Shown one piece after another: positions 51,601 through 60,449 of a stretch of 64,000 nucleotides of DNA. Position 1 is the first letter of the stretch; each line of letters opens with the position of its first letter. The position numbers were made by a program, and so were the translations under genes. This DNA is from Blastocladiella emersonii ATCC 22665. Lineage: Eukaryota > Fungi > Blastocladiomycota. The stretch spans positions 744,001 through 808,000 of the forward strand of contig JANHCV010000014.1 in the NCBI GenBank assembly GCA_025594325.1, given 5' to 3'. Under the pieces are notes generated by a model. It was not told where the DNA came from and ran no database searches. It was given only the letters and a program-made list of their open reading frames with translations.

Positions 51601-52247
51601 AAAATTGAAAGCCCAAACCACCTACTTGGATGCGGGCGCGGACGTGGTGGGCAGGTACAGGATGGTGTCGTTGTCGCTCTCGCGCTTGGGCGGCGACAGG
51701 GCAGGCGGGAGATACAGTTCCTCGGGCGCAGACTCAAGCGAAGCGGGGCGCGGAGCAGGCTTGTCCTGGACTGTGGGAGGCGAGCGGTGGCGGCGGCGGC
51801 GGCGGCCAAGGAGGAATGCGGCAGTAGCGAGCAGGAGCGCAATGGGGATCGCGATGCCAAGGAAGAGGGGAAGCTGGGACGTGGGGATGGGAGAAGGTGA
51901 AGTGGTGGGGATAGGGGTGGGGCAAATAGTCGTAAGGTTTTTCAGAGCAGCGTTGTCCTTCTCAAAGCACCTTCCTTCGCGCGTTGAACCTGCAAAGCAG
52001 GTAAACTTGTTCTGCTCGGACTCTCCATACAGGATATTGCACGAGGCCCTACGCAACTTACTGAGTTAGAGGTCCTGTGGAGGAAGGTGGGAGAAGCACG
52101 TACAGGGTAGGAGGGAGCTGGGGAAGCGGGCCGCTGAGCTGGTTGGCGTACAGGCCCCTACACAAATCCAGCACACAGTCAGCCACGTGTGGTGGTGCAG
52201 TCAAGGCGTGGTCGAGTGGCAACGTACAGATGTTGGAGGTTCACCAG

Positions 52248-52502
52248 TGCTATTCTACTCAGGCACGGGGGAAGCGGGATACACGCGACGTACAGTGACA
52301 GGATGGTATTGCAGGGGAAATCAACCAGTGTATCAAACAGGAACAGCTTCATTCATCCTCGAACAGGAACCGAGCGCGAGAGTGCGCCGCGCGTTGGGCT
52401 GCGGCGGAGGCGTGGGAGGCGGCGTCGGTGGGTGGCGTGATCCACACCTGACCTCGACGCGTGCGTGTCTCGCATGTCTCGCACGCACGCCCCACTACAG
52501 CA
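52248..52502 (-). repeat. 3' LTR of the copia element
   Basis: Direct repeat of 58558-58812, ends TGCTA...CTACAGCA. Preceded on the minus strand by the PPT-like GCGGGAG (52503-52509). Confidence 0.97.
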
Positions 52503-52528
52503 CTCCCGCATGGATCTCGGCACCCGGA

Positions 52529-55500
52529 CTACTTGGTCTTGACCGGGACGACGTCCTCGAGCTTGACCATGCCCATGGCCTTGAGCGTCTCGATGAACTG
52601 GTCGCGCGGCACGACCTTGGTGAGGTAGTCGGCGAGGTTCTTCTTGGACGGCACGTACTTGAGCTCGACGACCTTCTCCTTGACCTGCTCGCGCAGGAAG
52701 AACACGCGCACCGAGACGTGCTTGACGGACCGGCGCATGTCGCTCGTGGTGGCAAGGATGCACGCCGCGTCGTTGTCGATGAACGTCGGCACCATGTCGA
52801 TCTTCTTGTTGAGCAGGTCGGACGTGAGCGTGTTGAGCCAGGCCACGTCGCGGATCGCCTCAGTGGCGGCGTTGAGCTCGGCCTCGGTCGTTGAGAGCGC
52901 TACCCACGACTGGCGGCGCGAGCACCAGGTCGTCGCGCTGCCGTTGATCAGCGTGACGAACCCCGTGGTCGATCTGCGCGTCGCCTCGTCGCCAGCGAAA
53001 TCGGCGTCCACGTACGCGGACAGATCGACCGACCCATCGGCGGACCGGTGGTACATGATGCTGAGCGAGACGGTGCCCTTGAGGTACTCGACGATCGCAA
53101 TGAGCGCGTCCATGTCCATGGTCGTCGGGTTGGCCGCGTTCCGCGACACGACGCTGGTCGCGTACGCAATGTCGACGCGCGACACGGTCGCGAGGTGCAT
53201 CAGCCCGCCGAGCAGCGACAGGAACCGCTTGCGCTCGCCCGGGTTGAGCGGCACCGCCTCCTTGGCTGAGCTGGTGGCGACCCTGGGCGTGCTGCGCGTT
53301 CTGGGCGAGTCGCCGCCGAACTCCTTGATCAGGTCGCGCGTGTACTGCGGCTGGCCGATCCAGATCCCGTCCTTGGTCTGGATCACCTGCATGTTGAGGT
53401 ATTTCGAGGCCAGGCCCAGGTCCTTGATCTTGAGCTCTCGCGCGAGCGCGGCCTTGACAGCGGCGACCTCCTTCTCGTCGGTGCCCGCGATCAGGATGTC
53501 GTCGACGTAGGCGATCAGGTACGTGACGGACGTGCGCGTACGCCGAATGTACACGCAGCAGTCGGCGGCGCTGGCAATGAACCCGTTCTTGATGAGGATG
53601 GCGGCGAGGTGGTTCGACCACTCGTGGCCAGCCTGGCGCAGACCGTACAGCGACTTCTTGAGCTTCAGGACGTGGCCGTCCTTGATGTCCATGCCCTCGG
53701 GCGCGCGCATGTACACCGTCTCCTTCAACGACGCGTGGACGTACGCGCTCGTCACGTCCATCGAATGGACGGGCAGGCCCTGCGCGGCGGCGATGGCGAA
53801 CAGCGTGCGCGCCGATCCGTGGGCGACGGCGGGCGCAAACGTCGCGTTGAAGTCGCGGCCCTCGATCTGCTGGTTTCCGTGCGCAACGAGACGCGCCTTG
53901 AAGCGGGTCACCTCGCCCTTGTTGTTGCGCTTGAGCGCGAACACGAACATGGACGTGATGACGTGGGCCATGCGGCCGTCGCCGCGCACTGGCCACTTGA
54001 CAAACTCGAACGTGTCGTTGTCGATGAGGGACTGGAGCTCCTCCTTGATGGCCTGGACCCACTCGGCCCACTGCGCGCTGGACATGGCCTCCTTATACGT
54101 CCGAGGCGTCAGGATGTCAACGAACTCGCCGAGGAACGCGGCGGCCTTGTCGTCCAGCAGCGCCGCGATGAACCCGTAGTCGAGCGTGTACTCGTCACGC
54201 GCGCTGCTGTTTCGCGCAGCGTCGTCCGTCGGATCAATGGTGGTGTCCGAGTCCTTGAACTTGGCCGGCAGCTGGCCGCGGTTTGAGCGGGCCGGGTTGG
54301 TGCGCTTCGGCTCGCGCTCCAGATCAGGCGCGGGAGATGCAGCACGTTTCCGAGCCGCGACGCCGTGATCACCGATGGGCACCAGGTCCGTAGCGCCGTA
54401 ATCGCGATCGGGACCGGCGACATCGCAATGCGGTGCTGAGGCGGCTTCGCCGCCCGCACCCTCCCGCCGCGCAGCGGTGGACACGGCAGCCGGAGCTCCC
54501 GCCGACTGCGGCGCAGCAGCTTCCGCCGGCTGCGGCGCAATGGCTCCCGCCGACCTGGGCGCGGCAGCTCCCGCCGACTCGGGCTTGGCAGCTCCCGCCG
54601 ACTTGGGCGCGGCAGCCCCCGCCGACTCGGGCTCGGCAGCTCCTGCCGACTCAGGCGCGGCAGCCCCCGCCGACCGCCGGCGGAACGACCGCTCCATGAC
54701 GCGGGTCTCGTCGAACACGGCCCAGCTGGTGGTGTGGATCTCCTGGGTCTCGAGGTCAACAACAATGTACGCGGCACCGCCGTTGGTGTAGCAGAGCAGG
54801 CGCATCGAGGAACCACGCGGGCGGATCTTGCTGATGTTGTCGCGCGGGGAACGGACAACCACGTCCGCCGACCACGCGCGGAAGATGCCAAGATCCGGCG
54901 CCTCACCCGACCACGCCTCGTGCGGCAAGATGTGGTAGCGGCCCTCGGGCTGCTCAAGCGCGGTGCTCGGGAGGCAGTTGCAGACGAAACACGCGGCCGT
55001 GAACGCGTACGGCCAGTACGTCTCAGGCAGGTCAACGGCGGCAGCGATTGACGCGTGGGCCTTGACAGTCACGTCCTGCACCAGCCGCTCGATGCGCCCG
55101 TTGGCGTGGTGGTTACCCGGCGGCAAGAAATGCCACTCGATGCCCTTGGCGGCGGCCCACTCGGTGAGCGTCTTGTTCTTGAACTCGCCGCCGTTGTCCA
55201 AGCGGAACCACTTGACAGTGGTGTCGGTCTCGTTCTCGAGGCGGTTGACGAGCTTCATGATGAACTCGGGCGCGTTGGACTTGGCCTCGAGGGCAAACGC
55301 CCAGGCCTTGCGCGTGTAGTCGTTGAGCACGAGCAGGATGCACGTCTTGTCCTTGACGGCGGCCTTGTTGACAATGGCGAGGTCGAAGCGCAGGCACTCG
55401 AGGCGCGCCTTGGTCTTCTCGCCTGTGGGGCCCGCCAACGGGCCGCGCTGGATATTGGCCGTGACGCATGACACGCAGATGCCGCCCACATCCTCGTCGC

Positions 55501-57868
55501 CGTGGTTCCCAGTGCATTGACGGGCAAGGTTGACCAGCTTGTACGCCGGGTCCGCGAGGACCGCCTTGATGACGTGGGCGCCTGGGTGACCGAGCCGCAT
55601 GTGCGCGACGTGCTGCGGCGAGTAGTTGAGCGTCGCGTCGGCAAACGTGTGGAACGCGGCGTCGCACGCGCCGGCCTTGGGGACAGTCGCGCACGCCACC
55701 AGCGCCGTGTGCTGCGCGTTGGTCTCCTTGCCAATCATGTCGGCGAACGACTGCTTGTTGATCTTGGTCATGACCTCGACGGCCACGGCGCGCTCCTTGT
55801 TGATGGCCTTCTTCATGTCCTCATCCAATGGGCACGCCCAGAAACGGACGTCGGGGTGCGGCCCCGCGTACGTGCCAAGATCGGCGACCATCATGGCCAA
55901 CTCCTCCGTTGGGCGGTGGAAGTGGGCCTTCTCGGCCTTGGGCACCCGCGCCTGCGCGCGAGCGGGCAGCGCGCCGACAAGCGTCAGGAGGCGCCCATGG
56001 ATCGCGCCCTTGATCTTGCGGCCGCAGGCCAGCTCCAGCGTGAAGGTGGTCTTGTTGGCGGGGAACGTTGATGTCACGCCATCACGCTGCAGCTGCGTTG
56101 TGCTGATCAAGCGACGCGCCAGGTCGGGCGCGTACAGGACGTCACGTAGGATGATCCGGGTGGGCCGACCCTCAGTGTCAAGGGGCTGGATCTCGACCTT
56201 GCCAATGTGGGTCCCGTACACCGCCATCTGCAACTTGCCCACGGCAATGCAACGAGGGGTGTCGAGCTTGGTGAGCGAGGTGAAGTCATCCTTGTAGGGC
56301 GAGAGGTGCGTGCTGGCGCCCGAGTCAAGGAGCCAGGTCGACTGCTTGGACCCGTCGCCGTGCATCGTGGTGAGCAGGGCGTGCTCCGTGATCTCGTTCT
56401 TGTTGAGGTCGACCATGCACACGTAGGTCGCGTCCTTTCGCAAGCCACCCGCGCGGCGCTTCTCCTTGTGCGCCCGCGCAATGTCCTCCTTGATCTGGAA
56501 GCCCGCCGGCGCCGGGAACTTGGCCATGTCGTGGTCGCGGTCGTGCCAGCACCCGTCAATTACATGAGGCCAGCCACACAGGCACATCACCTTGCGGCGC
56601 CTGTTGCGGCTGCGGCTACAGCTGCGGTACCGCAAGCGCCAGTCGGGGGTGCAGCTACGACTGCGGTAGCTGCCCCGGTGGCCACCATCACAGCTGCGGC
56701 TGCAACTGCGACTGCGACTGCGGCTACGGCTGCGGCCACGACCCTTGCCGCCCCTGCGCCTGCGGTTGCGCCCGCCCTTGTCACCGCCGTTACCCATATG
56801 GCGATCGTCGGCAAGGAACGCCTGCTGCACCGCCACGTTGGCACGCTTGGCCAAGGTGGTGGCGTTGGCTGCGTGGGTGATTGCTGGGCGATGGCGCGCA
56901 AAGTACTCAATGATGACCTTGTGGATGTCCAACATGGTCTTGGCCTTCTGGAGCTCCTCGTCGAGCGAGATGAACGGCGACAGACCGGTGATCGTTGGGT
57001 TGAAAGCGGCCGGGATCTTGATGCCCACCTCGGTGTGGAACATGAAGAAGGCGGCCTTGCTGCCCATGTTGTGGGTACCCTCAGCGGACCCCATGGCGGT
57101 GGTGTAGTGCATGATCTTGTTCTGCAGGTCCACAAGGAACGCGGGCAGGTTGTTGAGGTTGGTCGAGTCAAACTGGGTGGCATTGAGCTGGCGCTTGAGC
57201 TTGGGCATCTGGGCCGAGTGGGTACGCTGCATGTAGCGGTACATCTGGAGCATGATCTCGATTGGCTGGTCGTTGTGGTTGACGGCGGCCTTGAGCCCGA
57301 CGGGGAGCAAGTCACGGATGGCAAGGTTCAGCTGCGTCGAGTGCGACGTGAACATGTTCTCGGTCCCCTTGGTCTTGGCGATCCACTCGGTCTCCGTGAA
57401 GAAGAGCGCCGACGCAATGCTGGCGCCGCGGGCCGCCATTACAACGTTGATGACCCATGGGTCAATGTTGATGCCCTCAATCGACTCGTGCTTGGCAATC
57501 TCGAGCTTGAAGGGCGGGATGCGCTCGATCTTGAGGTTGGGGACTGGGATCGGCATGTACGCCGCGAAGAGCAACTCGCGCGTCTTCTTGAACTCGTCGA
57601 CCAACATGCTGAGCTTGGCTGCCAGCTGCAGGTCAATGGTCGCCACAATCGGGCCGCTGCCGCTGCCGCTGCTGGTGGGCGTCTCAGGTGGTGGGCGCAG
57701 CGGGATCTCGGGCGCTGATTTGATTGTGTTGGAGTACTGGAACATGGCGTCACCAATCTGCAGGTTGACAATCTGCAGGCAGGCAGTTGGCTTGTCAATC
57801 TTGCCCTCGAGGAGGTCAGCAATGACCGCGTTGGCCTTGTTCTGCTTGTCCGTGTCGACGTCGGTCAT
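52529..57868 (-). CDS. Copia Gag-Pol polyprotein, single intact ORF (about 1779 aa from ATG 57868)
   Basis: Protease WLLDSGASTH; HMRLGHP/CVSC zinc site; integrase FD...RLDNGGEF...NGRIER; RT MDVTSAYV and YVDDIL; RNase H YVDADFAGD, TEAELNA, NLADYLTK. Confidence 0.95.
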   Translation of the reverse strand: MTDVDTDKQNKANAVIADLLEGKIDKPTACLQIVNLQIGDAMFQYSNTIKSAPEIPLRPPPETPTSSGSGSGPIVATIDLQLAAKLSMLVDEFKKTRELLFAAYMPIPVPNLKIERIPPFKLEIAKHESIEGINIDPWVINVVMAARGASIASALFFTETEWIAKTKGTENMFTSHSTQLNLAIRDLLPVGLKAAVNHNDQPIEIMLQMYRYMQRTHSAQMPKLKRQLNATQFDSTNLNNLPAFLVDLQNKIMHYTTAMGSAEGTHNMGSKAAFFMFHTEVGIKIPAAFNPTITGLSPFISLDEELQKAKTMLDIHKVIIEYFARHRPAITHAANATTLAKRANVAVQQAFLADDRHMGNGGDKGGRNRRRRGGKGRGRSRSRSRSRSCSRSCDGGHRGSYRSRSCTPDWRLRYRSCSRSRNRRRKVMCLCGWPHVIDGCWHDRDHDMAKFPAPAGFQIKEDIARAHKEKRRAGGLRKDATYVCMVDLNKNEITEHALLTTMHGDGSKQSTWLLDSGASTHLSPYKDDFTSLTKLDTPRCIAVGKLQMAVYGTHIGKVEIQPLDTEGRPTRIILRDVLYAPDLARRLISTTQLQRDGVTSTFPANKTTFTLELACGRKIKGAIHGRLLTLVGALPARAQARVPKAEKAHFHRPTEELAMMVADLGTYAGPHPDVRFWACPLDEDMKKAINKERAVAVEVMTKINKQSFADMIGKETNAQHTALVACATVPKAGACDAAFHTFADATLNYSPQHVAHMRLGHPGAHVIKAVLADPAYKLVNLARQCTGNHGDEDVGGICVSCVTANIQRGPLAGPTGEKTKARLECLRFDLAIVNKAAVKDKTCILLVLNDYTRKAWAFALEAKSNAPEFIMKLVNRLENETDTTVKWFRLDNGGEFKNKTLTEWAAAKGIEWHFLPPGNHHANGRIERLVQDVTVKAHASIAAAVDLPETYWPYAFTAACFVCNCLPSTALEQPEGRYHILPHEAWSGEAPDLGIFRAWSADVVVRSPRDNISKIRPRGSSMRLLCYTNGGAAYIVVDLETQEIHTTSWAVFDETRVMERSFRRRSAGAAAPESAGAAEPESAGAAAPKSAGAAKPESAGAAAPRSAGAIAPQPAEAAAPQSAGAPAAVSTAARREGAGGEAASAPHCDVAGPDRDYGATDLVPIGDHGVAARKRAASPAPDLEREPKRTNPARSNRGQLPAKFKDSDTTIDPTDDAARNSSARDEYTLDYGFIAALLDDKAAAFLGEFVDILTPRTYKEAMSSAQWAEWVQAIKEELQSLIDNDTFEFVKWPVRGDGRMAHVITSMFVFALKRNNKGEVTRFKARLVAHGNQQIEGRDFNATFAPAVAHGSARTLFAIAAAQGLPVHSMDVTSAYVHASLKETVYMRAPEGMDIKDGHVLKLKKSLYGLRQAGHEWSNHLAAILIKNGFIASAADCCVYIRRTRTSVTYLIAYVDDILIAGTDEKEVAAVKAALARELKIKDLGLASKYLNMQVIQTKDGIWIGQPQYTRDLIKEFGGDSPRTRSTPRVATSSAKEAVPLNPGERKRFLSLLGGLMHLATVSRVDIAYATSVVSRNAANPTTMDMDALIAIVEYLKGTVSLSIMYHRSADGSVDLSAYVDADFAGDEATRRSTTGFVTLINGSATTWCSRRQSWVALSTTEAELNAATEAIRDVAWLNTLTSDLLNKKIDMVPTFIDNDAACILATTSDMRRSVKHVSVRVFFLREQVKEKVVELKYVPSKKNLADYLTKVVPRDQFIETLKAMGMVKLEDVVPVKTK
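54485..54675 (-). repeat. 24-bp tandem repeats encoding (SAGAAxPx)n in the integrase-RT linker
   Basis: About 8 copies, visible in both DNA and protein. Confidence 0.9.
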
Positions 57869-57920
57869 CTGGTAGCGCGCGTGAAGCCATGTCAGGTCAG
57901 CTTCTTGTCCATGGTCATCT

Positions 57921-58097
57921 CCTTGGTGCTTCAGCTCCCTCGAGGGGCGAGCAAATCTCCTTGGTGCTCCAGCCCCCTCGTGGGGCGAGCAAAGCTCCTT
58001 GGTGCTCCAGCCCCCTTGTGGGGCGAGCAAAGCTCCTTGGTGCTCCAGCCCCCTCAAAGGGCGAGCTTTGGTGCTCAAGCCCCCTTGTGGGGCGAGC
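57921..58097. repeat. About 5 tandem 38-bp repeats in the copia leader, each with a GCCCC-N5-GGGGC hairpin
   Basis: Unit CCTTGGTGCTCCAGCCCCCTCGTGGGGCGAGCAAAGCT. Confidence 0.9.
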
Positions 58098-58235
58098 GAC
58101 CAGCATGCTCTACACCTTCCGGCGGAGCCTTCTACCCCTGCTGTCCTCATGACAGCTCAAGGTTGCTGGTTACATCGAAGACATCTCCTGCGTCTTCTTG
58201 AGCTGCGGCGAGAGGCTGCACCAGGGCTCATAACC

Positions 58236-58353
58236 TGCTATGATGTTAAGTGGACAAAACGGATCCGCCATGACATTCCTGCTACCTACAGCACTTGCTA
58301 TGATGTTAAGTGGACAAAACGGATCCGCCATGACGTTCCTGCTACCTACAGCA
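58236..58353. repeat. Two tandem 58-bp mini-LTR-like units (58236-58293, 58296-58353) separated by CT
   Basis: Each begins TGCTA and ends CTACAGCA, like the 255-bp LTR. One mismatch between units. Flanked by a second PBS (58222-58235) and a PPT-like tract (58354-58362). Confidence 0.85.
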
Positions 58354-58543
58354 CTCCCCCGCACTCAAGCATCACAGCTCGCTGGTCCATCAGGCTTCTG
58401 GTCTCTTGGGGCGGGCATTTTTCCTTCTGCATTTATCTCCATTTAGCGTCGTAAGCCTTTTTCACAATGGTGAGTGCCAGAGTCATGCTGTAGTCCCGCT
58501 CCCCCGAACTATAAATTGTTTAGCGCAGAGGATTGAACTCCGC

Positions 58544-58557
58544 CAGGGCTCATAACC
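58544..58557 (-). promoter_or_regulatory. Primer-binding site complementary to the anticodon-arm half of initiator tRNA-Met
   Basis: GGTTATGAGCCCTG directly after the 5' LTR. The plus strand CAGGGCTCATAACC matches the fungal tRNAiMet anticodon stem-loop, the half-tRNA priming known from copia-type elements. Confidence 0.9.
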
Positions 58558-58812
58558 TGCTATTCTACTCAGGCACGGGGGAAGCGGGATACACGCAACG
58601 TACAGCAACAGGATGGTATTGCAGGGGAAATCAACCAGTGTATCAAACAGGAACAGCTTCATTCATCCTTGAACAGGAACCGAGCGCGAGAGTGCGCCGC
58701 GCGTTGGGCTGCGGCGGAGGCGTGGGAGGCGGCGTCGGTGGGTGGCGTGATCCACACCTGACCTCGACGCGTGCGTGTCTCGCATGTCTCGCACGCACGC
58801 CCCACTACAGCA
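58558..58812 (-). repeat. 5' LTR of the copia element
   Basis: Direct repeat of 52248-52502. Confidence 0.97.
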
Positions 58813-60449
58813 ACCAGTTTATCAATCAAGGTGGGAATTGAGCCGCTGAGCTGGTTGTTGAACAGGTACCTACACAAACCAAGCGCACAGTCAGCCACGT
58901 GTGGTGGTGCAGTCAAGGCGTGGTCGAGTGGCAACGTACAGATGTTGGAGGTTCACCAGTTTATCAATCGAAGTGGGAATCGAGCCGCTGAGCTGGTTGT
59001 TGAACAGGGACCTACAACAAACCGAGCGCACAGTCAGCCACGTGTAGTGGTGCAGTCAAGGCATGGTAGGGTGGCAATGAACAGATCGCAGAGGTTCACC
59101 AGCTTCTCAATTGAGGTGGGAATTGAGCCGTTGAGCTGGTTGGCGTACAGGCCCCTACACAAATCCAGCACACAGTCAGCCACGTGTGGTGGTACAGTCA
59201 AGGCGTGGTAGGGTGGCAACGTACAGAGTTTGGAGGTTCACCAGCTTCTCAATCGAGGTGGGAATCAAGCCGCTGAGCTCGTTGCCACCCAGGGACCTAC
59301 AACAAACCGAGCGCACAGTCAGCCACGTGTAGTGGTGCAGACAAGGCGTGGTAGGGTGGCAACGTACAGAGTTTGGAGGTTCACCAGCTTCTCAATCGAG
59401 GTGGGAATCGAGCCGCTGAGCTGGTTGAAGAACAGGGCCCTACACAAGTCCAGCATAAGTCCGATCCCGAGGGCCCATCCTTGCACCACGAGACGCACAG
59501 TTCCGTCAAGCGGCCACTCGCATCGCACTTGTTATGACGCCACTTGCAGCAGTCCGGATCCGTTGGCTTCCTGCCAGGCGGCCACTGGAAGTCATTGATG
59601 ACGACGGCGCAGTCGGCGCTTGGTGACAGCGACAACGACGACATGGATGGCAGAGTGCGGGACAGGGGCGCAAGAGCGCGGACTGGCGGCGGGGGCGCTC
59701 GGCCGATGTGCTGCACGAGGGCGGGTCGGGTCGGCCAAGCCGTTTGCACGCTCCGCCCGCCCGCCTGGATAAGGACGGCGGCGCCCATGTGGGCGCACTT
59801 CGCTGCGGTGGCGCTGTCACGCCTTCTCCGCGTGATGTCTCGCACCGCCCGCTTCCCCGCCACGCGACGCGACGCGCCGCGCCACCACGTGCGCGCACGG
59901 GCCCATCTTTGCCCGCGCCGCCGCCAGGGTGCAGGCCAGGAGGGCTCGGTGGCGCCGCTCCGCCCCTCTCGCCGCCTTCCCCCGTCGCTCCGCCATCTGC
60001 GCCTCTCCTCCATGAATCGATCTCATTGACTTGCTGCATTCTGCCCGCCAGGCCTTCGGCAACATCAGGCCGCCCGGCCCCGGGTCGCCAACCGTCACGG
60101 CGGCGTGGTCCGACCCGCTGGCACACTGTGCAGCCGGGCGTTTGGTCACTCTCGCGGCGGGCGGCGGGCGGCCGACGAATTCGCAGCCGAGGAGAACCCC
60201 ACTGATGACGAACCCACTCCCTGCAATCCCTTCATGAAGCAATTGAGAGTGGCCACGGTTGCGGTCCGGGGCCAGTTGGAAAAGATGCTCCACTCGATGG
60301 GCCCCTCGCCTGGCCAAAACACAAACTACTAACCACCGATGCACTCTGCTCACCGCGGGCGTCGATACATCATGACGATGACCGTCTCCTGTCAGGCACG
60401 AAAACTCATGTATTACTCGCTACCCCAGCTCCATCACCCCCCAACTCAA

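Follow-up and report, generated by a model that had tools for sequence, protein, structure and literature searches.

Terminal-repeat retrotransposons in miniature (TRIMs) and the SMART elements of grasses, the latter about 290 bp long, are small, non-coding LTR elements, and the physical interaction of TRIMs with their helpers has mostly been deduced from common termini. Circles with two LTRs (2-LTR circles) are an ordinary by-product of retrotransposition and, like other cDNAs with joined ends, are considered dead ends. An internal part of the initiator tRNA-Met (tRNAiMet) serves as primer for Drosophila copia and yeast Ty5, and half-tRNA priming through the anticodon stem-loop region of this tRNA is known from Drosophila copia. 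The accepted mark of a circle that arose by joining of the ends of a linear cDNA is an LTR-LTR junction at which a few bases have been added or lost (PMC9324142). Complex LTR retrotransposons have been attributed to template switching (PMC1950507) or to recombination between cDNAs before integration (bioRxiv 10.1101/452573). Here we describe a locus in Blastocladiella emersonii at which a mini LTR element lies, in permuted order, in the leader of a Ty1/copia element.

The host element is located on the minus strand at positions 52248-58812 of the window (the whole stretch of 64,000 nucleotides that was analysed) and is bounded by the TSD CTGGT. It possesses TG...CA LTR ends, the 5-bp TSD and a tRNAiMet PBS. 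The domains Pol_BBD, rve (934-1013), SH3_retrovirus and RVT_2 (1380-1622) are found in the 1873-aa ORF, with the integrase upstream of the reverse transcriptase in one polyprotein, which is the Ty1/copia order. The large LTRs, 255 nt each, differ at four positions, all of them CpG sites. Joining the copia flanks leaves an LRR exon uninterrupted, which reads LFNNQLSGSIPTLIDKLVNLQHLY. The insertion in this exon (window 58813-59454 and 52101-52247) splits a unit between ...IDKL and VNLQ...; the LRR gene is composed of repeated units, each with one 72-nt LRR exon and an intron of about 70 nt, giving a period of 142-143 bp. About five tandem 38-bp repeats, at 57919-58104, separate the leader from the recognisable gag region; they sit within the long ORF though 38 is not a multiple of 3. 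This array is a family trait, the sister copias being equal in total length.

Table 1. Features of the composite element, in the order of the element strand except for the downstream TSD copy, which is listed beside its upstream counterpart
Feature	Window positions	Strand	Basis or remark
Upstream TSD copy on the element strand, CTGGT	58813-58817	(-)	same 5 bp at 52243-52247
Downstream TSD copy, CTGGT	52243-52247	(-)	matches 58813-58817
Copia 5' LTR, 255 nt, TGCTGTAG...ATAGCA	58558-58812	(-)	repeat finder and sequence comparison
PBS1 GGTTATGAGCCCTGG, 15 nt	58543-58557	(-)	14 nt complementary to initiator tRNA-Met nt 26-39
Mini-element internal region, non-coding, 180 bp	58363-58542	(-)	colinear with five free minis, 94-97% identity
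Mini-element PPT GCGGGGGAG, AG at end	58354-58362	(-)	precedes 3' mini-LTR in every free copy
Mini-LTR copy 1, 58 nt; 3' LTR of the mini in linear order	58296-58353	(-)	
AG dinucleotide, junction of mini-LTR U5 end and U3 start	58294-58295	(-)	read from sequence
Mini-LTR copy 2, 58 nt; 5' LTR of the mini in linear order	58236-58293	(-)	
PBS2, second PBS copy, copia leader next	58221-58235	(-)	
Copia leader	58151-58220	(-)	
gag-pol, single ORF, 1873 aa	58150-52529	(-)	
Copia PPT TGCGGGAG	52503-52510	(-)	
Copia 3' LTR	52248-52502	(-)	repeat finder and sequence comparison

The order of parts given in the initial annotation (copia LTR, PBS, an internal stretch, PPT, two mini-LTRs separated by AG, a further PBS, leader and gag-pol) proved correct to the base, although the internal stretch, put there at about 190 bp, measures 180 bp. 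A direct repeat of LTR end plus PBS had also been reported, and is present at the spacing claimed (322 bp), though as a 21-mer and not a 20-mer; its copies, at 58221-58241 and 58543-58563, are exact, and each consists of the last 6 nt of the LTR (ATAGCA) followed by the 15-nt PBS. The cassette lies exactly between these two copies and represents one complete mini element, circularly permuted, with its opening at the PBS and its closure where the end of one LTR meets the start of the other. The composite holds two PBSs, two PPTs and two internal mini-LTRs, and the helper is otherwise intact-looking. The two mini-LTR copies are identical at 57 of 58 positions, the single difference being a CpG-to-TpG change in copy 2.

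A mini-retroelement of roughly 320 bp had been postulated from the window, together with a search for free copies in the order mini-LTR, PBS, internal region, PPT, mini-LTR. When the cassette was used as a query against the genome to which the window belongs (32.65 Mb, 21 contigs), five full free copies of 320-322 bp were found in this linear order, four of them with perfect 5-bp TSDs (GTTAC, GGGCG, GGCGT and AAGGA); the most diverged full copy has no TSD. The cassette is not a product of chance, since other loci of the genome have the same 320-bp unit as a free element flanked by TSDs. The mini-LTRs of the five full copies are direct repeats of 58-59 nt (TGCTG...TAGCA), with the PBS right after the 5' LTR and the PPT right before the 3' LTR; the 180-bp interior has no coding capacity. 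The genome further contains at least 13 solo mini-LTRs with perfect 5-bp TSDs and two internally deleted derivatives, both with TSDs and one of them within a segmental duplication. Old, diverged members are also present, namely a copy on contig C20 at 94% identity and one degenerate solo LTR. The TSDs at independent loci demonstrate mobility, and the mini is therefore a repeatedly mobile, non-coding, TRIM-like LTR element at the small extreme of that kind.

The segmental duplication just mentioned (C11:761450 and C11:624578) is 99.5% identical over at least 2.75 kb, its copies are 137 kb apart, and the internally deleted mini that it contains is about 124 bp long with the TSD CCCCA. No tRNA gene was found inside the mini by ARAGORN, and no Rfam match to a known RNA family at E up to 1. 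The predicted RNA fold of the interior is no more stable than that of shuffled sequences (z = -0.28). A tRNA-like element was considered and rejected, the T-arm-like hairpin beside the PBS being better read as a complement of the tRNAiMet D-arm.

The mini-LTRs and the large LTRs have common termini but not a common interior, as the initial annotation had stated; both start with TGCTGTAG and end in ATAGCA, with nothing alike in between. What the mini and copia have in common is the first 8 and the last 6 nt of the LTR and the PBS; the PPTs are near-identical (TGCGGGGGAG in the mini, TGCGGGAG in copia), and the 21-mer is the only sizeable sequence found in both. Judging from the common LTR termini, the half-tRNAiMet PBS and the near-identical PPT, we regard the mini as a parasite of the copia family. 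The PBS is complementary to nt 26-39, the anticodon stem-loop, of the genome's initiator tRNA-Met, which was located and read in this genome. Downstream of the PBS both elements show extra complementarity to the 5' half of tRNAiMet, in different sequences: the mini has 10 nt (58523-58532) complementary to D-arm nt 10-19, and the copia leader has 7 nt (58190-58196) complementary to acceptor-strand nt 2-8 and a D-arm-like stretch at 58207-58215. This complementarity may provide extended contact with the primer. The initiator tRNA-Met gene is repeated at least nine times in C1:4810-63783 at a spacing of about 7.37 kb, with tRNA-His and tRNA-Pro genes beside it in the one unit scanned; the arrangement resembles a large tandem array that includes tRNA genes.

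The junction in the cassette reads ATAGCA-AG-TGCTGTAG. Complete LTRs abut here, U5 end to U3 start, and the extra bases can be traced to an unprocessed cDNA end, as in the junctions of 2-LTR circles. In every mini copy AG stands immediately before the 3' mini-LTR, and its presence at the junction is as expected for joined, unprocessed cDNA ends with a plus strand starting 2 nt upstream of the integrated end; this suggests that the mini cDNA carries a 2-nt AG extension at its U3 end only. The cassette occurs once, and nowhere else in the 32.65 Mb of the genome is its mini-LTR/AG/mini-LTR junction found. No other LTR-LTR junction, whether of the mini or of copia, was found genome-wide with the pattern ATAGCA, 0-12 nt, TGCTGTAG. 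With no second LTR-LTR junction in the genome, a donor in the form of two tandem minis on a chromosome is ruled out.

Both mini-LTRs of the cassette have a rare CT-TAAC variant, whose sole other occurrence is the 5' LTR of the free mini C5:932426-932745; the remaining mini-LTRs all read CTCTCAC. Because of this common variant and their 57/58 identity, the pair fits an origin from one reverse-transcription product and not from two separate insertions. The C5 copy itself has a TSD and unlike LTRs, of 58 nt with CT-TAAC at the 5' end and of 59 nt with CTCTCAC at the 3' end. Such a pair is not given by reverse transcription of one template, and points to recombination or intermolecular strand transfer.

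Divergence is similar within the two LTR pairs, 1/58 for the mini-LTRs and 4/255 for the copia LTRs, and all of the differences are CpG decay. In the cassette (58236-58542) five of 17 CpG sites have decayed, compared to 22 of 526 in the copia body (52529-58220; Fisher p about 0.001). Either the cassette came from an older or separate mini lineage and not from the young copies of today, or decay proceeds faster in it than in the host. With respect to acquisition before or after integration, the LTR-pair divergences agree, yet the interior of the cassette is more decayed than the host.

Sister copias with and without the cassette had been proposed as a check. A genome search with the whole element as query returned six, four of them full-length (6242-6243 bp) and two deleted; the window copia without the 322 bp is 6243 bp long. 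In all six the LTR and PBS are joined directly to the leader, and the cassette is present in one of seven copia copies. Two copias (C8:120887-127129 and C8:146331-152573), in opposite orientation and 19 kb apart, have identical flanks and only five differences, and are an inverted segmental duplication including the element.

Given the cassette-free sisters and the free minis, the 322-bp cassette is, by sequence comparison, a secondary acquisition by copia. The reverse reading, an ancestral leader duplication in which the cassette is the original leader of the family and the free minis are derived from it, is refuted by the cassette-free sisters (six of six) and retains practically no probability; free minis and solo mini-LTRs are moreover many, some of them old and diverged, and the cassette shows derived CpG decay relative to them. 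For a structure that occurs once and is seen in assembled sequence, an error of assembly might be suspected, or else an ordinary nested insertion by integrase with rearrangement afterwards. We consider this very improbable. The cassette has seven private differences from all free minis and a junction found nowhere else, and was therefore not stitched from reads of other loci; in an assembly that we take to be PacBio HiFi (PMC9730499), reads would span the whole element. Nested insertion should have left outer mini-LTRs with a 5-bp TSD, and these are not seen: as the initial annotation had argued, the permuted order does not derive from normal integrase insertion, which is ruled out by how the parts are arranged and by the lack of any inner 5-bp TSD. 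We hold it highly probable that the cassette represents a mini cDNA in permuted order, the ends of which were joined and which underwent exchange at the PBS. The simplest topology, which we would rate at about even chances, is a 2-LTR mini circle and one exchange with the helper at the common 21-mer. A linear mini cDNA would carry the 2-nt AG extension from plus-strand priming at its U3 end, end joining would close it into a 322-bp 2-LTR circle, and a single exchange at the 21-mer would put the whole circle into the leader of the helper. This exchange may have been by crossover or through break repair that copied once around the circle; its partner could have been a chromosomal copia or an unintegrated copia cDNA. 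A crossover of this kind at the PBS was the original proposal, and the free minis, cassette-free sisters and unique junction that it predicted were all found, while the circle itself we infer from its product. Several points speak against the circle: only the product is seen, and from a single event; homologous recombination would have had a short match of 21 bp to work with; and duplex DNA of 322 bp is close to the smallest sizes that circularise readily. The heavier CpG decay of the cassette is predicted neither by this model nor by its rivals. The PBS is also used in normal plus-strand transfer, and a reverse-transcription route therefore explains the same boundaries.

The main rival, which we consider doubtful, is such a route, namely reciprocal intermolecular plus-strand transfer between co-packaged copia and mini. 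Each plus-strand strong-stop DNA would anneal via the common PBS to the minus strand of the other element, yielding one chimeric cDNA with copia LTR, PBS, mini internal region, PPT and mini-LTR, and a second with AG, mini-LTR, PBS and copia leader through to the copia LTR. Integrase would then join both outer copia ends to a single target, leaving the inner mini-LTR ends to be sealed by host end joining. The exchange is placed exactly at the PBS, the mediator of this obligatory step, recombination on 21 bp is not required, and both elements end in the same integrase-recognised termini; the similar divergence of the mini-LTR and copia LTR pairs fits acquisition at integration. The unlike LTRs of C5:932426-932745 are obtainable by intermolecular plus-strand transfer, a hint that it happens in this family, though gene conversion could also yield them. 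Against this rival are the several unusual steps that it needs (intermolecular transfer, a two-molecule intasome and end joining) and the absence of a lone half-chimera from the genome in searches with the cassette and with the whole element. That one virus-like particle was the site at which the composite was built, through reciprocal plus-strand transfers at the PBS, and that an intasome bridging two DNA molecules then inserted it, is in our opinion unlikely. Copy choice between RNAs gives the same topology: a longer-than-unit mini transcript, from a 2-LTR circle or a tandem, would be co-packaged with copia RNA, and reverse transcriptase would switch templates twice at the PBS. Complex LTR elements are known to arise through template switching (PMC1950507), but two switches on the same 21 nt and read-through of a whole LTR are required here, and a template with an LTR-LTR junction would still be needed, whereas the genome has no chromosomal tandem; we regard copy choice as decidedly unlikely.

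The locus, the product of a single event, is a genomic fossil of a rare kind, in which joined ends of retrotransposon DNA were exchanged at a common PBS. It preserves in a chromosome the LTR-LTR junction of a parasite, and a direct join of parasite and helper at their common primer-binding site. The locus offers a testable case of the re-entry of circles into genomes or, alternatively, of TRIM/helper co-packaging, within the limit of one event in one genome. If the single-particle reading is true, it is a natural record of TRIM-helper co-packaging and of integrase joining the ends of two molecules in vivo. There is no sign of later spread of the composite, which is found at one locus in the genome. 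The idea, put forward in the initial annotation, of a parasite riding inside its helper is unsupported; with the composite at one locus only, nothing shows a benefit to the mini from its place inside copia. In a literature search that was not exhaustive we found no described permuted element with a parasite LTR-LTR junction fixed at the PBS of its helper.

Like TRIM and SMART elements, the Blastocladiella mini is non-coding, with two short direct LTRs having TG...CA ends, a PBS and a PPT, and it has a 5-bp TSD, solo LTRs in the genome and dependence on an autonomous partner. It differs from these in its size, which with LTRs of only 58-59 bp and a total of about 320 bp is at the small extreme, in its half-tRNAiMet PBS, and in that its helper can be identified in the same genome through common termini, PBS and PPT. 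The PBS pairs with an internal part of tRNAiMet and not with the 3' end of the tRNA, as in Drosophila copia and yeast Ty5; unlike those, the Blastocladiella mini and copia add short complementarity to the D-arm or the acceptor 5' strand downstream of the PBS.

The junction resembles that of the 2-LTR circles of retroviruses and LTR retrotransposons (PMC3148978; PMC9324142), where complete LTRs abut U5-U3 with a couple of extra bases and the LTRs are alike. Those circles are normally extrachromosomal dead ends, whereas the present junction is chromosomal, lies within another element, and was entered at the PBS and not via integrase. As in complex LTR retrotransposons, a composite of two elements lies within one TSD and derives from replication intermediates. 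The complex elements have the structure LTR-internal-LTR-internal-LTR, with a common middle LTR, and belong to one family (PMC1950507; bioRxiv 10.1101/452573). A shared middle LTR is absent here, the inner LTRs abutting and the outer LTRs belonging to a different element; the composite instead unites two different elements, parasite and helper, through an LTR-LTR junction and an exchange at the PBS.
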